Virus record (IMG/VR): IMGVR_UViG_3300043399_000297
Span: 124,001-188,000 of that record
Reading direction: 5' to 3' (one strand)
Length of the DNA: 64,000 bases
Positions 4,002 through 60,914 of the stretch are shown one piece after another (within the stretch, counting starts at the first letter, position 1; every line of letters starts with the position of its first letter). Made by a program: the position numbers and the translations under genes. A model generated the notes under the pieces. It saw only the letters and a program-made list of their open reading frames with translations, made no database searches and was not told the origin of the DNA.

Positions 4002-4683
4002 TCTAACAACCGGTGAAGGTTACATATTCCTAGAGAATATTATACCACACGATCTTATTGATGGGATCAACAGTAAACTAGATACACTATATCCTGTTCG
4101 TGCATCCAGTGCAGGTAAGCAATATGCAGAAAAAGATGACATAAAGAATCTACCTGATATTAGCGTTTGGTGGAGTCAAATGACTATGGATTGGCCAGAA
4201 GTATATTTGATCAATGACTTCTTAATTACACAAGTAAGTAAGGAGTTAGATAACTCAGTTTGGTATGCTAGCGATATAGTCACGATTAACGGTGATAGTA
4301 AGTGGGTGAATCCACATGTGGATACCCCACATAGATTTGATCAATGGAATATGGATGATAGACTGTTAGGAGTGCAGTGCATCGTTTCATTGCAAGATAC
4401 TACTCCTGAAATGGGAGCAACTGGATTTGTACCAAACAGTCATATACCAGACTGGGACATTCATCTATGCTATAACGGTGCATATAACAAATATTTTTAT
4501 GATTTTTGTGAACAGAAACATATGCCGAAAGGTAGTGTATTGATGTATAACTGTAGATTGCTTCATAGTAGTATGCCAAATTATTTTCATGAACCTCGCC
4601 CAATGCTCTTGCTAAATTATCTAAACGGTGATATAGTAGAAGATGTGAAAAAGATAGATAATATTTGGAGTTCAAATGGCTAG
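3994..4683 (+). CDS. phytanoyl-CoA dioxygenase (PhyH) family 2OG-Fe(II) oxygenase
   Basis: PHVD (HxD) motif, GATGFVPNSH, and KGSVLMYNCRLLHSSMPN..PR (distal His and Arg). Confidence 0.85.
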   Translation: MSDLTTGEGYIFLENIIPHDLIDGINSKLDTLYPVRASSAGKQYAEKDDIKNLPDISVWWSQMTMDWPEVYLINDFLITQVSKELDNSVWYASDIVTINGDSKWVNPHVDTPHRFDQWNMDDRLLGVQCIVSLQDTTPEMGATGFVPNSHIPDWDIHLCYNGAYNKYFYDFCEQKHMPKGSVLMYNCRLLHSSMPNYFHEPRPMLLLNYLNGDIVEDVKKIDNIWSSNG

Positions 4684-5233
4684 GCATTGTATGCTGGATA
4701 TGGAAACGCTTGACACTGCACCGTCAACTGTTATCCTCACGATTGGTGCAGTGATTTTTGATCCGCGCGGTATGGGAGTCACTGATACTCTTGATCTTCG
4801 CCCCACGATTGATGAACAGACCGACACATATGGTCGCACTATAAGTGACGCTACTATGCAATGGTGGAGCGGCCAGAGTCCAGAAGCGATTGAAGAAGCT
4901 ATGGGTGATCGTGATCGTATCCCATATCGTGACGCAATGGAAAAGCTTTATAAGTTCTGCTGGAACTGTGATAAGGTCTGGGCTAACGGGTCAATCTTTG
5001 ATATCGCAGTGGCAGAAAGTGCATTTCGTGATCTTGAAATGCAGATGCCCTGGCAGTTTTGGAACATTCGTGATTGTCGCACTATTTATGATCTTGCCGG
5101 TGTATCGTTGAAGGATGCAAAGTATCAGACTAAGACTACTCACAAGGCCGTAGAAGATGCTATACACCAGGCTATTGTTATTCAAGACGCATACAAGATT
5201 TTTATGAAGGCTGGATTGACTCATATCCGATGA
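4676..5233 (+). CDS. DEDDh 3'-5' exonuclease
   Basis: MLDMETL (ExoI), WANGSIFD (ExoII), HKAVEDA (ExoIII). Confidence 0.85.
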   Translation: MARHCMLDMETLDTAPSTVILTIGAVIFDPRGMGVTDTLDLRPTIDEQTDTYGRTISDATMQWWSGQSPEAIEEAMGDRDRIPYRDAMEKLYKFCWNCDKVWANGSIFDIAVAESAFRDLEMQMPWQFWNIRDCRTIYDLAGVSLKDAKYQTKTTHKAVEDAIHQAIVIQDAYKIFMKAGLTHIR

Positions 5234-5454
5234 ACACTGAAAAAGAAAATATTTGGCGAACACTGCAAGGGTTGAAGCCTATTCAGCCATTAAAGTGTCG
5301 TTTGGGGTGGCATCGTTGGACTAGCTTTGAAGTGACTGACGGTGATTATGGAATGGGATATGGAGCTGCTGCAAGATGTAATTGTGCGGATTGCGGATTA
5401 CCCAGAGTAGAATATCCCGTCAGATTATTAGGTCCTAAAAATAATGCAAATTGA
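5230..5454 (+). CDS. small Cys/His-containing hypothetical protein
   Basis: CRLGWHRW...CADCG motif; overlaps both neighbours. Confidence 0.6.
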   Translation: MNTEKENIWRTLQGLKPIQPLKCRLGWHRWTSFEVTDGDYGMGYGAAARCNCADCGLPRVEYPVRLLGPKNNAN

Positions 5455-6013
5455 TAGTGACATTGACATTGATGTTGGGAATCGTGATCAACTGTTATCA
5501 GTGATCAAGCATATTCCTGCCGCAATGCGCAAAGTCAATCCTATCCGCAAACATCCAAGTGGTATCTATATCACAGATATTCCCTATGATCCTATAAACG
5601 ATATGGCATCAATTGATTATGTTGAAGCCGAACAGAGAGGATATTTTAAACTAGACATTCTTAATGTCCACGTATATGAAAAAGTAAAGGACGAAGAACA
5701 TTTAGTTAGATTGATGGAAGAACCAGATTGGTCTATGCTCAATGACAAATCTATAGTTGAAAAACTAATACACCTTAATAATTCATTCTATGTTATTCAA
5801 AGAATGCCAGAGCCAATTAATAGTATCCCTAGACTTGCTATGTTTCTAGCAGTTATTCGTCCTGCTAAAAAGCATCTGCAAGGGTTATCTTGGAAAGAAG
5901 TTGCTAAAACTGTGTGGGATAGAGATGTAGACGGGTACAGCTTCCGAAAGTCTCACGCAATAGCTTATGCCCAATTAGTTGTTGTTCATATGAATTTATT
6001 GAGGGGAGTATAA
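5444..6013 (+). CDS. dnaE: DNA polymerase III alpha (DnaE)-like fragment carrying the catalytic aspartates
   Basis: SDIDID, KHPSGIYI, GYFKLDILN and YSFRKSHAIAYA match DnaE PDxDxD, HAGGVVI, GLVKFDFLG and YGFNKSHSAAY. Confidence 0.85.
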   Translation: MQIDSDIDIDVGNRDQLLSVIKHIPAAMRKVNPIRKHPSGIYITDIPYDPINDMASIDYVEAEQRGYFKLDILNVHVYEKVKDEEHLVRLMEEPDWSMLNDKSIVEKLIHLNNSFYVIQRMPEPINSIPRLAMFLAVIRPAKKHLQGLSWKEVAKTVWDRDVDGYSFRKSHAIAYAQLVVVHMNLLRGV

Positions 6014-6276
6014 TGGCCGAAATCAAAATCAAGCGTAAGCCTGTAAGAATGAATGAAAATATGACAGCTATGCAAATTAGGCGTAAGCATATAAACATTA
6101 CTGGAAAGATCACAACACTACAGGAGCAGATTAAGCAATTGCAGGAACTATGTCAGCATACAAATGTTGAGAAGAAGTATAAAGCCAACACAGGCAACTA
6201 CGATCCCTCTGCTGACAGTTACTGGATTGATTGGAGATGCCCGGATTGCGGCAAACGATGGATAACAGACCAATGA
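6013..6276 (+). CDS. hypothetical protein with a zinc-ribbon-like C-terminus
   Basis: CQH...CPDCGKRW. Confidence 0.6.
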   Translation: MAEIKIKRKPVRMNENMTAMQIRRKHINITGKITTLQEQIKQLQELCQHTNVEKKYKANTGNYDPSADSYWIDWRCPDCGKRWITDQ

Positions 6277-7076: not shown

Positions 7077-7189
7077 TAGACTTTTTAAAGTTTGTTTTCG
7101 TTGTTGTCTATATAGTTACAATAGAAGTTTATGATAGGATATTTAATGCAGATAAAGTTGTTAGAAGAAGGAAACGAATTACTGACTAA
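7073..7189 (+). CDS. putative 38-aa membrane peptide (MIDFLKFVFVVVYIV...)
   Basis: ATGA overlap with the previous stop; hydrophobic N-half and basic tail; overlaps the def start. Confidence 0.3.
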   Translation: MIDFLKFVFVVVYIVTIEVYDRIFNADKVVRRRKRITD

Positions 7190-7664
7190 TGCCTGTGAAG
7201 AATGGGACTTTGAGAAAGACGGTGATCCTACCGAGTTAGTCAAAGATTTGTTCACCGCGTTAGTTGAGTATGGCGGTGTTGGGCTTGCTGCCCCGCAATG
7301 TGGAATTATGAAGAACATCTTTGTAATGGGCAACTTCCAGAAATTGACAGCCTGCATTAATCCTGTTGTAGTTGAAACGAGTGATAATGCAATAGTTGAT
7401 GTAGAAGGATGCTTGAGCTTTCCGGGACTATGGCTTAAGGTAAAAAGACCTACTAGTGTAACAGTGCAATATCAGAATATTGAGGGCAAGACTGTTCAGG
7501 AAGAACTAGATGGACTTGCTGCAAGGGTGTTCTTGCACGAATTTGATCACTTGTTTGGCATTACATTTGATAACAGGGTAGGGGAATTAAGTTTGAAGAT
7601 GGCTAGAGAAAAGAGAAAGAAGTCAATAAAGAAACTATCTAGGGCATCCGCTTCACAAGCGTAA
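7146..7664 (+). CDS. def: peptide deformylase
   Basis: GVGLAAPQ, EGCLS and HEFDH signature motifs. Confidence 0.95.
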   Translation: MQIKLLEEGNELLTNACEEWDFEKDGDPTELVKDLFTALVEYGGVGLAAPQCGIMKNIFVMGNFQKLTACINPVVVETSDNAIVDVEGCLSFPGLWLKVKRPTSVTVQYQNIEGKTVQEELDGLAARVFLHEFDHLFGITFDNRVGELSLKMAREKRKKSIKKLSRASASQA

Positions 7665-8907: not shown

Positions 8908-9885
8908 GTGTTTGATATATTAACCATTGTTCCTGGTAAAAAGAAGACAACTGGCAAGGGCTGGGTAAGCTTTAATGCACCTTGTTGCCACAATAGGGGA
9001 CATAGGCCAGACAAAAGAAGTCGCGGCGGCATCAAATTTGATGGTGATACTAATTGGTCATATCACTGCTTTAACTGTGATTTCAAATGCGGATTCATTT
9101 TGGGAAACACTTTTAGTAAGAACTTGAAGATGTTTTTGTCTTGGTGCGGAGTACCAGACGAGCAGATTACTAAATGGAACTTTGAGAGTCTACAACAAAA
9201 AGACTTAATTGAATATATCAAAGTAAAGAAACAGAAATCAAAGGTAAAATTTAAAGAAACTAAACTTCCTGAAGATGCTATACTCATTGATGAGAATAAC
9301 ATAGATCATAAAAAGTATGCAGACTATATTAAAAGTCGCGGATTATCAGTCAATGACTATCCCTTTATGATCACGCCAGATGAAGAGGGTAGAAACAGTA
9401 ATAGAATTGTCATACCCTATACATTTGAGGGCAAAATCGTAGGTCATATTAGTAGATATCTTGACAATCGTATTCCTAAGTATATTAAAGAGCAGCAAGT
9501 AGGATATGTGTTTGGATATGATTTACAGAAACCTGAATATGAAGTATGCGTTGTGGTCGAGGGTATATTTGATGCGCTGAGTATCAATGCGTGTGCATTA
9601 ACTCACGATACTATAAGCGACGAACAGGCAGAAATACTAAGAAAGCTTAATAAAAAGATAATAGTAGTGCCTGACTTAGATAAGTCCGGAATGACAATAT
9701 GTGATAGAGCAATTGAATTGGGATTTTATGTATCTATTCCTAATTGGGACGATGACATAAAGGATACCAATGATGCTATATTAAAGTATGGCAGAGTCCC
9801 TACATTACTAAGTATCTTACAGTCAGCAACTAATAGTAAGATTAAGATAGAATTACAGAGGAAGAAAATTGCTAAAAGAATATAA
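8908..9885 (+). CDS. DNA primase (T4 gp61/DnaG-like)
   Basis: N-terminal Zn motif (PCC...YHCFNC); TOPRIM VVEGIFDA and PDLD. Confidence 0.9.
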   Translation: MFDILTIVPGKKKTTGKGWVSFNAPCCHNRGHRPDKRSRGGIKFDGDTNWSYHCFNCDFKCGFILGNTFSKNLKMFLSWCGVPDEQITKWNFESLQQKDLIEYIKVKKQKSKVKFKETKLPEDAILIDENNIDHKKYADYIKSRGLSVNDYPFMITPDEEGRNSNRIVIPYTFEGKIVGHISRYLDNRIPKYIKEQQVGYVFGYDLQKPEYEVCVVVEGIFDALSINACALTHDTISDEQAEILRKLNKKIIVVPDLDKSGMTICDRAIELGFYVSIPNWDDDIKDTNDAILKYGRVPTLLSILQSATNSKIKIELQRKKIAKRI

Positions 9886-11281
9886 CACCGACGTTCAAGA
9901 ACTATTTTTAAGAATGATGGTAACTAACGCAGAGTTGTATACTCGCGTTATGAACATTATGAATCCTCAGAACTTTGATCGTAGACTTAGGCCGGTTGCT
10001 GAATTCTTAGTTGATCATACTAACAAGTATAGTATTATGCCTGATCCAACGCAGATTAAGGCTACTACAAGCGAAACTATTGAAGCAATACCTGACTTAA
10101 CTGAGGGGCATTATGAGTGGTTCTTGGAAGAGTTTGAAGCGTTCACTAAACGCCAAGAACTTGAAAGAGCTATTCTTAAGGCAGCAGACTTGCTTGAGAA
10201 GGGTGAGTTTGATCCTGTTGAAAAACTAGTTAAAGATGCTGTTCAGATTAGCTTGATGCGTGATATGGGCACAGACTATTTTGCTGATCCTAAGCAACGA
10301 CTAGACAAATACTTTAATCAGGGTGGTCAGGTATCTACAGGCTGGCCTCAGCTTGATAGAGTTATGTATGGCGGAATGAGTCGCGGTGAGTTGAATATCT
10401 TTGCAGGTGGTTCAGGTTCTGGTAAAAGTCTCGTGATGATGAACATCGCATTGAATTGGTTAGAGCGCGGACTAAGTGGCGTTTATATCACATTAGAACT
10501 TAGTGAAGAACTTACTTCACTTAGAACCGATGCTATGCTTACAAGTATGAGCACCAAAGATATTCGTAAGAACCTAGATGATTCTGCATTGCGTGTCAAG
10601 ATGGCAGGTAGAAAGATGGGTACTTATCGTGTTAAGAAATTGCCCGCTCAAAGCAATGTCAATGCTATCAGAGCATATATCAAAGAAGTTCAAATTCAGA
10701 CTGGGATCAAGATCGACTTTGTTATGGTTGACTATCTTGATCTTGTTATGCCTGTGTCAGTCAAGGTCAATCCCAACGATCAGTTCATTAAAGACAAGTA
10801 TGTTTCGGAAGAACTTCGCAATCTTGCAGAAGAACTTAATGTATTGTTCATCACTGCTAGTCAGTTGAACCGTAGTGCAGTTGAAGAAATTGAGTTTGAT
10901 CATAGTCATATTGCAGGCGGTATCTCAAAGATCAATACTGCTGACTATGTGTTTGGTATCTTTACTTCACGATCTATGAAGGAGCGCGGCAAATATCAGA
11001 TTCAATGTATGAAAAGTCGTAGTTCTACTGGTGTGGGACAAAAGATTGACCTAGAATATAATATCGAAACTATGCGTATTACTGATGAGGACCCAGAAGA
11101 GGGAAGAACACATACCCAAACACCTAGTCAACTTATGAGTCAAATACGGCCCGGGCCGGGAGGAATTGTTTCGCCGGGCTCGAATGGCCCGGCTGCAACA
11201 ATAGAAAATACACCTAAGATAAATGCAAATGTGGATGGAGCTAAACTAAAATCATTGTTGAATTCTCTCAAGAAAACTTAA
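9869..11281 (+). CDS. replicative DNA helicase (DnaB/T4 gp41-like)
   Basis: Walker A GGSGSGKS, ITLEL, VDYLD, TASQLNR. Confidence 0.93.
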   Translation: MLKEYNTDVQELFLRMMVTNAELYTRVMNIMNPQNFDRRLRPVAEFLVDHTNKYSIMPDPTQIKATTSETIEAIPDLTEGHYEWFLEEFEAFTKRQELERAILKAADLLEKGEFDPVEKLVKDAVQISLMRDMGTDYFADPKQRLDKYFNQGGQVSTGWPQLDRVMYGGMSRGELNIFAGGSGSGKSLVMMNIALNWLERGLSGVYITLELSEELTSLRTDAMLTSMSTKDIRKNLDDSALRVKMAGRKMGTYRVKKLPAQSNVNAIRAYIKEVQIQTGIKIDFVMVDYLDLVMPVSVKVNPNDQFIKDKYVSEELRNLAEELNVLFITASQLNRSAVEEIEFDHSHIAGGISKINTADYVFGIFTSRSMKERGKYQIQCMKSRSSTGVGQKIDLEYNIETMRITDEDPEEGRTHTQTPSQLMSQIRPGPGGIVSPGSNGPAATIENTPKINANVDGAKLKSLLNSLKKT

Positions 11282-57461: not shown

Positions 57462-57704
57462 ATGGAACATCCATTCATTGATAAATCTACGCTTGCTGAC
57501 AAGTCACTAGAAGAATTGCAAGATACCATATCTGGATTAATGAACAAATTGACTTTTGCATATCGAACTGGTAATGGTCCATTAATTCATCAATTACAGA
57601 TGGTGATTGAAAGCTATAGAGGTCAATATTCTAAAAAGATGGATGAGATGTTCGCTAAGCAAAAACTAAACAATCAAATCAACATTCAGTCGGATAAATT
57701 ATGA
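57462..57704 (+). CDS. hypothetical protein
   Basis: Helical ORF in operon. Confidence 0.65.
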   Translation: MEHPFIDKSTLADKSLEELQDTISGLMNKLTFAYRTGNGPLIHQLQMVIESYRGQYSKKMDEMFAKQKLNNQINIQSDKL

Positions 57705-58252
57705 ACACTAGGATTGAACGAGACTTCTATTTTCACGCTGCACTACACTTCAAAAAGGAGTTTTACGTTAATACCTATGACATTACGTTATCTATGCTCA
57801 TAGATACAGACAGTGCAAGAGAACAGCAAGTGGCTATGGACAGGATATTACATTATCTGAAATGTATATTCAGTGATTGTATCTTTGTTCACTGTTTAGA
57901 TACTGAATCTATCAACAAATACAAAATGGCGGGCATAAGAGTTTGTGAACTACCAGAAGAACCCTGGGACCAAGTTGTAGCAATGGTAGTTTTAAACAAG
58001 TTAAATGCTATAATGGAAAATAGAATACGTATTACTGATATGGTATTGGCTAGTGCGATGAGCGAGGGTGTTAGATATTCAATCGTCAGTGAAGAAGCAG
58101 AAAGTGTATTAGCTGGAAATAACTGGTGGAATAACGCAAGTATGTCAATTACAAATGAGAATGGTTATCCTGGAGAGAACGTAGTCAAGTTATTTCACGA
58201 AGACGATTGGATTAGTTTGGGGTTATCCTGGAAAGAAATGGGTAAAACTTAA
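57701..58252 (+). CDS. hypothetical protein
   Basis: ORF overlapping the previous stop. Confidence 0.7.
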   Translation: MNTRIERDFYFHAALHFKKEFYVNTYDITLSMLIDTDSAREQQVAMDRILHYLKCIFSDCIFVHCLDTESINKYKMAGIRVCELPEEPWDQVVAMVVLNKLNAIMENRIRITDMVLASAMSEGVRYSIVSEEAESVLAGNNWWNNASMSITNENGYPGENVVKLFHEDDWISLGLSWKEMGKT

Positions 58253-58254
58253 TA

Positions 58255-58283
58255 TTGACATTATGTTAAGTTAGTGCTATCTT
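58255..58283 (+). promoter_or_regulatory. sigma70-type promoter TTGACA-N17-TATCTT, leaderless into ATG 58290
   Basis: ATG 6 nt after the -10. Confidence 0.65.
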
Positions 58284-58289
58284 GACACT

Positions 58290-58796
58290 ATGGAAAGAGA
58301 CAAGTTCGGCCAAATCATATATAATGAGAATGACTTAATAGACTTGTATCTATCCAATCCTGACATTAGCTTAAATAACGTTATCGTAAATAAAAAAATA
58401 GTATTCAATAATGAATTGTCACTAGAAAATATACCGGAACTGATTGACTACCTGGTTAGTGATAGTAGCATTGAAGATTTTGATAAAGAATGTCAGAACA
58501 ATTGGTTTCTTCCTGACGAATACAAAACTTTTGATATTGCACAGTTTGTATTAGATCAATGCACTAATCAGGAAGAACTACAACGTGCTGGTGAAGAGTT
58601 ATTGCTTTACCAAGAACGTGATATGTTTATGTTACTTAGATATCTAAAATACTTTGTAGATACGATGAGGAAACATAAAATAGTATGGGGAGTTGGGAGA
58701 GGCTCTAGCGTTAGTAGTTTTGTATTGTTTTTAATTGGTGTCCATAAGATTAATTCATTATACTATGACCTTTCTGTTGATGAGTTTTTAAAGTAA
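58290..58796 (+). CDS. dnaE: DNA polymerase III alpha (DnaE)-like fragment, N-terminal palm part
   Basis: RAGEEL...VWGVGRGSSVSSFVLFLIGVHKINSLYYDLSVDEFLK corresponds to DnaE GPGRGSGAGSLVAYAL.IT.LDPL.FDLLFERFL. Confidence 0.85.
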   Translation: MERDKFGQIIYNENDLIDLYLSNPDISLNNVIVNKKIVFNNELSLENIPELIDYLVSDSSIEDFDKECQNNWFLPDEYKTFDIAQFVLDQCTNQEELQRAGEELLLYQERDMFMLLRYLKYFVDTMRKHKIVWGVGRGSSVSSFVLFLIGVHKINSLYYDLSVDEFLK

Positions 58797-58836
58797 GGTT
58801 TTCGCTGTATAAATAAAAATGACAAGGAGTTAATTT

Positions 58837-59315: not shown

Positions 59316-59684
59316 ATGGCAAATCAAATACACATTACAAAGCACAAGATTGAGAAGATTACTCCACTAAAGGATACTATTTTAGTTCACGGAATGGAGT
59401 TTAAAGAGCGTCTAAGTAGGGGTGGAATCATTCTTATGGACGACGATATGAAAAGCCAAGGCATTCGGCCAAGATGGGCGCAGGTCTACGCTGTTGGTCC
59501 GGATGTTACAGATATTAAAGTAGATGATTATATTATGATAGCACACGGTCGCTGGAGTCGTGGGATAGCAATTGAAGACGAAGACGGCGAGAAAACGATC
59601 CGTAAAGTAGATCCAAATGACATTTTATTAATTAGTGATGAACCAGTAGAAGATTATACAATGAGTGATAAGGTTATTGCTTAA
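59316..59684 (+). CDS. groES: GroES-like co-chaperonin
   Basis: PLKDTILV...SRGGIIL...VYAVGP...IKVDD. Confidence 0.85.
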   Translation: MANQIHITKHKIEKITPLKDTILVHGMEFKERLSRGGIILMDDDMKSQGIRPRWAQVYAVGPDVTDIKVDDYIMIAHGRWSRGIAIEDEDGEKTIRKVDPNDILLISDEPVEDYTMSDKVIA

Positions 59685-59816: not shown

Positions 59817-59987
59817 ATGAAAAATCAAACTAAAAAAGAAATAGTTGCTCTTGCTGCATTAATAGGTGCAGCAGGAGCAGCAACCTATATGTTCTTAAAG
59901 ACATACAAATCCATTCGTGATTTGGAGAACATTGATCTTGACATTGGCGATGATAGTGTGTTATCTTCTCTTTTTAAGAAGGATTAA
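59817..59987 (+). CDS. small protein with an N-terminal membrane anchor
   Basis: IVALAALIGAAGAATYMFL. Confidence 0.5.
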   Translation: MKNQTKKEIVALAALIGAAGAATYMFLKTYKSIRDLENIDLDIGDDSVLSSLFKKD

Positions 59988-59990
59988 TCA

Positions 59991-60914
59991 GTGAAGAATC
60001 GGTTGTGGGTTGAGAAATATCGCCCATCTAAAATAGATGATTATGTGTTTGTTGACGATAGACAAAAGAACACAGTTGAGCAGTGGATCAAAGACGAGTC
60101 TATTCCCCATCTATTGCTTTCAGGCGATCCCGGCACAGGTAAAACTACATTAGCTAAGGTTCTTATCAATGAACTTAATGTAGAAGACTTTGACGTTCTA
60201 GAAATCAATGCTAGTAGAGAAAATGGCATTGACAACCTTAGAGAAAAAATCAATGGCTTTGTGCAGACTATGCCTTTCGGCAAGTTCAAGGTTGTTTTGT
60301 TAGACGAAGCTGACTATCTTACTCAGCCAGCACAGGCAGCATTGCGTAATGATATGGAAGCATATCACGAAACAGTCAGATACATTTTAACTTGTAACTA
60401 TCAGCACAAAATTATTCCTGCGTTGAAAAGTCGTTGTCACGAATTCCATATCGCAAAGCCCGATATCACGGAATACACAACTCGTGCCGCTACTGTTCTT
60501 ATAAACGAAAACATTGAGTTTGATCTAGATGACCTTGACACATATGTTCGTGCCTGTTATCCCGATCTAAGAAAGTGTTTGAATCAGTTACAGCAGAATA
60601 GCATCACTGGTTCTCTTGCCAAGCCACAGTCAACTGGTAGTGGCGAAGATGAACTATTGGTCGCTGCTACAGAATTGTTCAAGAGTGGTAAGATTCTTGA
60701 AGGTCGTCAGCAATTGTTACAATATATCAGTCTATATCCAACTCGGGTAGAAGATGTGGTAAGATGGGCATATGACAATCTTGATCTTTGGGGTAAGACT
60801 CAAGAGAGCAAAGATGCTTCAATTGTGATCATTCGCAATACGTTAGCAAACCTGCCCTTAGTAGGGATACCTGAAATAAGCATTGCGGCCATGATGGTTG
60901 AATTATGTAGCTAA
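59991..60914 (+). CDS. clamp-loader large subunit (T4 gp44 / RFC-like AAA+)
   Basis: [30 protein letters not shown]. Confidence 0.95.

Follow-up and report, generated by a model that had tools for sequence, protein, structure and literature searches.

Two distant genes for a minimal split DNA polymerase III alpha in an uncultured phage

A minimal split form of the bacterial DNA polymerase III (Pol III) alpha subunit was described in group 2.2 (T4-like) jumbo phages by Iyer, Anantharaman, Krishnan, Burroughs and Aravind (2021, Viruses 13:63; PMC7824862, sections 3.4.1 and 3.5), in genomes that also encode a family B polymerase (PolB). The two proteins were interpreted as an NTP-binding N-terminal part and a Mg2+- and template-binding C-terminal part, which may cooperate with PolB in the synthesis of one strand or in repair (PMC7824862). 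Examples are found in phages PA5oct and Paride, in Rak2, 121Q and GAP32, and in Atu_ph07, and the two halves correspond to PHROG 11127 and PHROG 11778. Here we analyze two small open reading frames (ORFs), which we call the N-half and the C-half, in a stretch of 64,000 nucleotides (the window) that spans bases 124001-188000 of the linear 244-kb IMG/VR virus record IMGVR_UViG_3300043399_000297, estimated to be 71% complete. The two ORFs are halves of a phage-specific minimal split Pol III alpha; the kind was thus already described computationally in 2021, and the present pair, from an apparently freshwater jumbo phage, is a distant member of it.

The pair shares with the group 2.2 enzymes the location of its halves in two distant genes with the C-half first, the presence of PolB, the helicase, primase and clamp-loader neighbors and the same motifs. 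It differs from the cultured group 2.2 copies in sequence, being no more than 48% identical to them, in belonging to a large uncultured and apparently freshwater clade, and in the DEDD exonuclease that usually lies upstream of the C-half. The cellular C-family polymerases DnaE and PolC have in common with it the palm fold, the GRGS loop, three catalytic aspartates, the K-x-D lysine, the RP(G) motif and the K-S-H steric-gate helix. However, DnaE and PolC are single chains of more than 1000 amino acid residues, whereas the mini enzyme has 357 residues in two chains, carries a 67-residue N-terminal extension and lacks the PHP, thumb, distal finger, beta-clamp-binding, HhH, OB and tau-binding parts. 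No natural C-family polymerase core smaller than this is known.

Two other systems offer partial parallels. The split DnaE of cyanobacteria is also a C-family polymerase made from two distant genes, but its parts are joined by a trans-splicing intein; the mini enzyme has no intein, its break lies inside the palm, before the DxD motif, and its halves must associate non-covalently. The replisome of Bacillus subtilis employs both PolC and DnaE, and DnaE extends RNA primers. As a functional analogy only, this offers a second, less processive C-family polymerase beside the main replicase, with its gene located among those for replication; unlike in B. subtilis, the main enzyme here is of family B.

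Identity and conservation of the two halves

Both ORFs are on the plus strand with 52,276 nt between them, the C-terminal half being encoded first (Table 1). An earlier note on this DNA, made from the letters alone, had listed the two ORFs with their ends, motifs and combined length of 357 residues, all of which are present as it described. Residues 68-168 of the N-half form the initial section of the palm, which includes the GVGRGSS loop at 134-140, and residues 1-67 are a family-specific extension for which no DnaE counterpart was found. The C-half supplies the remaining palm and a minimal finger, without the thumb and about 100 residues of the finger; its motifs are D6-x-D8, K69-x-D71, R139-P140 and K169-S170-H171. 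The only public runs containing the sequence are two DNA runs, both from a freshwater metagenome.

Table 1. Coordinates of the split polymerase genes and of associated features (positions in the window unless marked otherwise).
Feature	Position	Strand	Remarks
DEDD 3'-5' exonuclease, Rv2179c-like	4676..5233	+	Pfam PF16473, E 1.1e-38; two genes upstream of C-half
C-half, split minimal Pol III alpha	5444..6013	+	189 residues; starts MQIDSDIDID; contains KLDILN and FRKSHAIAYA
T4-type DNA primase	8908-9885	+	PHROG 47, E 1.6e-37; about 3 kb downstream of C-half
DnaB-like replicative helicase	9869-11281	+	PHROG 19, E 1.4e-72; after the primase
Conserved 183-residue gene	57701..58252	+	Directly upstream of N-half; predicted T-fold (PTPS/QueD-like)
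Putative sigma-70-like promoter, extended -10	58255..58283	+	TTGACA-17-TGcTATCTT; consensus match only
N-half, split minimal Pol III alpha	58290..58796	+	168 residues; ends GVGRGSS...YDLSVDEFLK-stop
Near-identical putative promoter before clamp loader	59938-59967	+	Pattern TTGACA, 17-18 nt, TGnTATCTT
RFC-like clamp loader	59991..60914	+	PHROG 168, E 3.3e-75; three small genes downstream of N-half
Family B polymerase	G000:C1:208336-211053 (about 20 kb past the window end)		905 residues; exonuclease and polymerase domains

At the sequence level, the similarity of both ORFs to Pol III alpha is far above chance. The N-half matches the Pfam model PF07733 (DNA_pol3_alpha) past its curated cut-off (E 1.4e-8), and a profile built from 34 homologues hits solved Pol III alpha chains (E 0.0024), aligning residues 94-167 with Taq alpha 381-454 and residues 98-167 with Escherichia coli alpha 323-392. 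Pfam searches with the C-half returned zero matches and a single-sequence phmmer search against the PDB only noise, so that its link to DnaE comes solely from a profile of 82 homologues and from the fold search. This profile matches E. coli alpha (E 3.9e-5) in three aligned blocks (residues 4-20 with 399-417, 55-140 with 539-641 and 152-179 with 740-768). In PHROG, both halves fall into families named 'DNA polymerase': the N-half into PHROG 11127 (E 9e-41) and the C-half into PHROG 11778 (E 5e-58).

Structure models agree with these assignments. AlphaFold2 returned predicted local distance difference test (pLDDT) values of 96 for the C-half and 87.5 for the N-half, and Foldseek with VIA-align found DnaE and PolC as the sole real neighbors, unrelated folds reaching a Z of at most 3.4. 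The C-half model aligns with a VIA Z of 9.0-9.5 over 184-186 of its 189 residues and is equivalent to E. coli 397-778; residues 68-168 of the N-half model reach a Z of 10-12 and are equivalent to E. coli 278-393. By these matches, the two chains span E. coli alpha 278-778 with some 290 residues. The N-half ends opposite E. coli residue ~393 and the C-half starts opposite ~397, with D6 and D8 in the places of D401 and D403. The break therefore lies immediately before the catalytic DxD, as the earlier note had placed it, and alignments and fold matches are in agreement on this point.

Residue conservation was assessed in 82 C-half homologues at 33-59% identity and in 34 N-half homologues at 37-76% identity. 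D6, D8, K69, D71, R139 and P140 are invariant in all 82 C-half homologues, H171 is present in 81, and position 169 is lysine or arginine in 80. The finger helix FRKSH (C-half 167-171) aligns with E. coli 756-760, and the E. coli equivalents of the conserved positions are D401, D403, K553, D555, the RPG at 639-641 and K758-S759-H760. In the E. coli enzyme D401, D403 and D555 are catalytic, and H760 has been proposed to exclude ribonucleotides as a steric gate (PMC8485763). All 34 N-half homologues have GVGRGSS at 134-140, which aligns with the Taq and E. coli alpha sequences, and all end in [EDK][FY][LI]K (EFLK in 31 of them) with an invariant last lysine. Judged by this conservation, the active site is under selection.

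Outside the active site the enzyme is heavily reduced. According to the C-half profile alignment, E. coli 418-538 has shrunk to 34 residues and 642-739 to 11. No PHP (PF02811), DNA_pol3_finger or HHH_6 domain (PF17657 and PF14579 being among the models used) was detected in the two ORFs or elsewhere in the 244-kb record, and the control genomes were positive in the same searches; the record likewise has no PolA domain, apart from one sub-threshold PolA match (E 0.019). The record being only about 71% complete, these searches do not prove the missing Pol III domains absent. Within this scope they bear out the absence of a PHP domain noted earlier, and they turned up no further Pol III fragments of the kind that the earlier note suggested looking for.

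The two halves form a very large family in uncultured, apparently freshwater, phages. At 90% identity, the sequences of each half fall into at least 8000 clusters, and in almost all of these the length is 168-169 residues for the N-half or 190-192 residues for the C-half. The halves were never adjacent in 80 IMG/VR loci of the N-half (flank 1.5 kb) and 80 of the C-half (flank 3 kb). Five long IMG/VR relatives with the N-half, two of which are complete genomes, all carry the C-half as well, 37-128 kb away. The split point is fixed, and separation is the rule. Among records of cultured phages, tblastn found the C-half in 96 and the N-half in 92, with matches for both halves in PA5oct-like phages, Atu_ph07 and Rak2-like phages; the closest cultured copies, in PA5oct-like phages, are at most 48% identical to ours. 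GenBank records of several cultured phages already name one or both pieces Pol III alpha.

Predicted pairing of the two chains

Prediction of the complex between the N-half and the C-half, also proposed in the earlier note, gave a score of 0.91 in three runs, the best of three controls scoring 0.00. The mark used for such scores is reached by 58 of 80 solved complexes and by 2 of 110 mismatched pairs, counts that are rough guides here since our own alignments were used. In the predicted interface, the GRGS loop (134-142) contacts the DxD strand (3-13) and residues 168-171. Single-chain DnaE structures have been solved, so the score measures likeness to the DnaE palm and is not proof of binding.

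Nature also provides the two halves as one chain. Single-chain fusions of 375-376 residues occur in three 90%-identity clusters from different sources. One fusion lies on an ENA metagenome contig (L007:1066-2193), and the others are P0391 and P0392. In P0286 (375 residues), the N-part is 36% identical to the N-half (E 7e-26) and the C-part 41% identical to the C-half, with a linker of about 10 residues between them; the other two clusters have a length of 376 residues and come from other sources. P0286, the sole fusion placed in the C-half tree, nests with two proteins of split size (support 100/88), and the fusion is therefore probably secondary. Such natural fusions would be convenient single-chain constructs for biochemistry.

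The predicted complex, the natural fusions and the co-occurrence of the two halves in cultured phages and in the five long relatives all support a heterodimer, that is, one enzyme formed from two chains. The earlier proposal of a two-subunit, heavily reduced C-family enzyme is thus upheld by the structure matches, the invariant active site, the complex prediction and the natural fusions. The role of the enzyme is far less certain than the identity of its halves and their association in a heterodimer.

Proposed role beside the family B polymerase

The earlier note saw in the mini enzyme the polymerase of a T4-type replisome, in the place that a B-family enzyme takes in T4, and advised searching the rest of the genome for another polymerase. 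That search found a family B polymerase of 905 residues in the same record (Table 1), with motifs A (DINSLYPS), B (KILLNSAYG) and C (YGDTDS) intact. Its sequence ends in an aromatic tail (...VDDFFSFG), which resembles the clamp-binding tail of the T4 and RB69 polymerases; neither half of the mini enzyme has a comparable tail. PolB of about 900-980 residues is present in all five long relatives, in one case as two ORFs. In that record (G005, the record of locus L014), the PolB matches at C1:163654-166082 fall in ORFs of 560 and 417 residues, which may represent a split or interrupted PolB. The placement of the mini enzyme in the stead of PolB is thus not supported: the mini Pol III does not appear to be the replicase, and the family B polymerase remains the replicase of the phage. 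Of the two findings that the earlier note had set against its own proposal, a complete polymerase does exist elsewhere, whereas the fragments, which were to be poorly conserved, are very well conserved.

In the mechanism that we propose, the two halves would be translated separately, without intein or splicing, and would associate non-covalently into one palm of the Pol-beta fold with a minimal finger. The N-half would provide the GRGS loop that binds the triphosphate. The C-half would contribute the three aspartates that bind the metal ions, the lysine of the K-x-D motif, the RP motif and, on the K-S-H helix, the steric-gate histidine. The resulting heterodimer would be an active, template-directed and primer-extending DNA polymerase that selects deoxynucleoside triphosphates. 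It would probably be distributive, because thumb, HhH, OB, clamp-binding and proofreading domains are all missing. Since an intact PolB accompanies it in this record and each of the five relatives also has a PolB, its role would be an accessory one within the T4-type replisome, such as gap filling, repair or primer extension. We consider this whole reading, a non-covalent two-subunit mini Pol III acting as an accessory polymerase beside PolB, to be probable.

Several points weigh against it. About 190 residues of the region equivalent to E. coli 397-778 are gone, and the deletion of E. coli 418-538 presumably removes the whole thumb, going by the domain borders reported by Lamers et al. 2006. 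DNA-binding HhH and OB domains and an evident clamp-binding tail were not found in the mini enzyme, which makes ordinary processive synthesis doubtful. The complex score may in part reflect the memory that the model has of single-chain DnaE structures. No RNA runs containing the phage sequence were present among the public runs. Finally, in the literature that we searched, no study was found in which the split enzyme had been expressed, purified, assayed for activity or examined by genetics, so that its activity, its dependence on a template and its role are all deduced.

A bolder version of the accessory reading, which we think unlikely, makes the mini Pol III a true second polymerase of the replisome that would extend primers or fill lagging-strand gaps and then hand over to PolB; in the freshwater clade it might even form a three-piece core with the DEDD exonuclease as its proofreader. 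If this were true, the phage would possess a natural minimal C-family polymerase within a hybrid replisome of bacterial and archaeo-eukaryotic parts.

The main rival to an accessory polymerase is that the heterodimer is an active nucleotidyltransferase and not a templated polymerase, either a terminal transferase acting on DNA ends or primers or an enzyme making a nucleotide product for host takeover or counter-defense. The Pol-beta-like nucleotidyltransferase superfamily, to which the palm belongs, has many non-polymerase members, and the loss of the thumb and of all auxiliary DNA-binding domains would fit such an activity. However, the finger motifs specific to the C family, namely the steric-gate histidine, the lysine and serine preceding it and the RP motif (PMC8485763), are retained, the sole structural neighbors are DnaE and PolC, and the genes nearby are those of a replisome. 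We therefore regard this rival as rather improbable.

That the mini Pol III is itself the replicative polymerase, replacing the B-family enzyme in a T4-type replisome, is suggested by the location of the C-half near the primase and DnaB helicase and of the N-half near the clamp loader, and by the strict conservation of the catalytic residues. Against this stand the complete PolB with its exonuclease domain, motifs A, B and C and aromatic tail like that of T4 and RB69, the occurrence of PolB in all five long relatives, two complete genomes among them, and the want of thumb, clamp-binding and proofreading parts in the mini enzyme. Iyer et al. (2021) also assign the part of primary replicase in group 2 phages to PolB (PMC7824862), and we hold a replicative mini Pol III to be quite improbable.

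Decayed, non-functional remnants of a captured dnaE, or an assembly artifact, might explain why the ORFs are so small compared with DnaE and why the C-half has no Pfam match, but thousands of homologues with the same lengths and termini, the invariant active site, the confident AlphaFold2 models (see above for pLDDT) and synteny that persists in complete genomes of cultured phages even at 48% identity leave very little room for this explanation. A joining of the halves after translation by a split intein has its precedent in the trans-splicing DnaE of cyanobacteria and is hardly conceivable here: the Pfam search of the ORFs detected no intein domain, no residues are left for intein parts because the N-half ends and the C-half starts at nearly abutting E. 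coli positions, the C-half does not begin with the Cys, Ser or Thr expected after an intein, and the natural fusions join the halves by their short linker only; the earlier note, too, had seen no split-intein ends at the break.

Should the accessory polymerase be active, it would mark the smallest catalytic unit with which the family of bacterial replicases can work. Its activity would also bear on the origin of the C family, which may have grown from a small palm-plus-finger module, as proposed by Iyer et al., as opposed to the phage enzyme having been pared down. For annotation, both small ORFs should be named as halves of one enzyme. What the window adds to the earlier description is the size of the family in uncultured freshwater phages, the fixed split point, the rare natural fusions and the adjacency of an exonuclease in one subclade.

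Neighboring genes and sites

The replisome genes around the halves (Table 1) have a counterpart in the PA5oct-like phage Paride, at 48% identity, where the layout of C-half, primase and helicase is the same and the clamp loader follows the N-half at a distance of two small genes. The DEDD exonuclease is found upstream of the C-half, in the same orientation, in 47 of the 55 IMG/VR loci whose C-half is at least 60.5% identical to ours, several of the eight negative loci having too little upstream sequence to judge, and in 0 of the 25 loci below that identity. In one complete relative the exonuclease is 47 kb away, and its family is absent from the complete genome of Paride. The idea of an obligate partner was rejected, since the adjacency is limited to the subclade of at least ~60% identity and fails in Paride; the exonuclease could be a lineage-specific proofreading partner.

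Next to the N-half, the conserved 183-residue gene was present in 62 of the 80 N-half loci. It has no match in Pfam or PHROG; its structural neighbors in the ESM Atlas are PTPS proteins (template modeling score 0.57-0.62), and it is weakly similar to Paride_0086, which occupies the same position in Paride. We considered it as a missing piece of the polymerase and rejected it, its predicted PTPS/QueD T-fold being unlike any Pol III domain. A bona fide PTPS gene is located elsewhere in the record (G000:C1:220221-220604).

Promoter-like sites of the type listed in Table 1 occur four times in the 244 kb, compared with ~0.07 expected from shuffled sequence, and those before the N-half and the clamp loader are two of the four. 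Because the former ends 7 nt before the ATG, a nearly leaderless mRNA is predicted for the N-half. In the short gap that follows the N-half and precedes a 158-residue ORF, there is a T4-late-promoter-like TATAAATA at ~58807-58814 (plus strand), which suggests that the temporal class changes directly behind the N-half. Beyond the 158-residue ORF lies a GroES/gp31-like gene (59316-59684; PHROG 931, 'head morphogenesis').

The ORFs bordering the C-half (5230-5454 and 6013-6276, plus strand) contain pairs of CxxC motifs suggestive of zinc ribbons. The 74-residue flanking ORF shares 11 nt with the start of the C-half and recurs in only 5 of 80 related loci; the 87-residue one matches PHROG 4837, a family of unknown function (E 1.4e-22). 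Further downstream, the translation of a 177-residue ORF (7131-7664, plus strand) contains EGCLS and HEFDH, two motifs that are characteristic of peptide deformylase.

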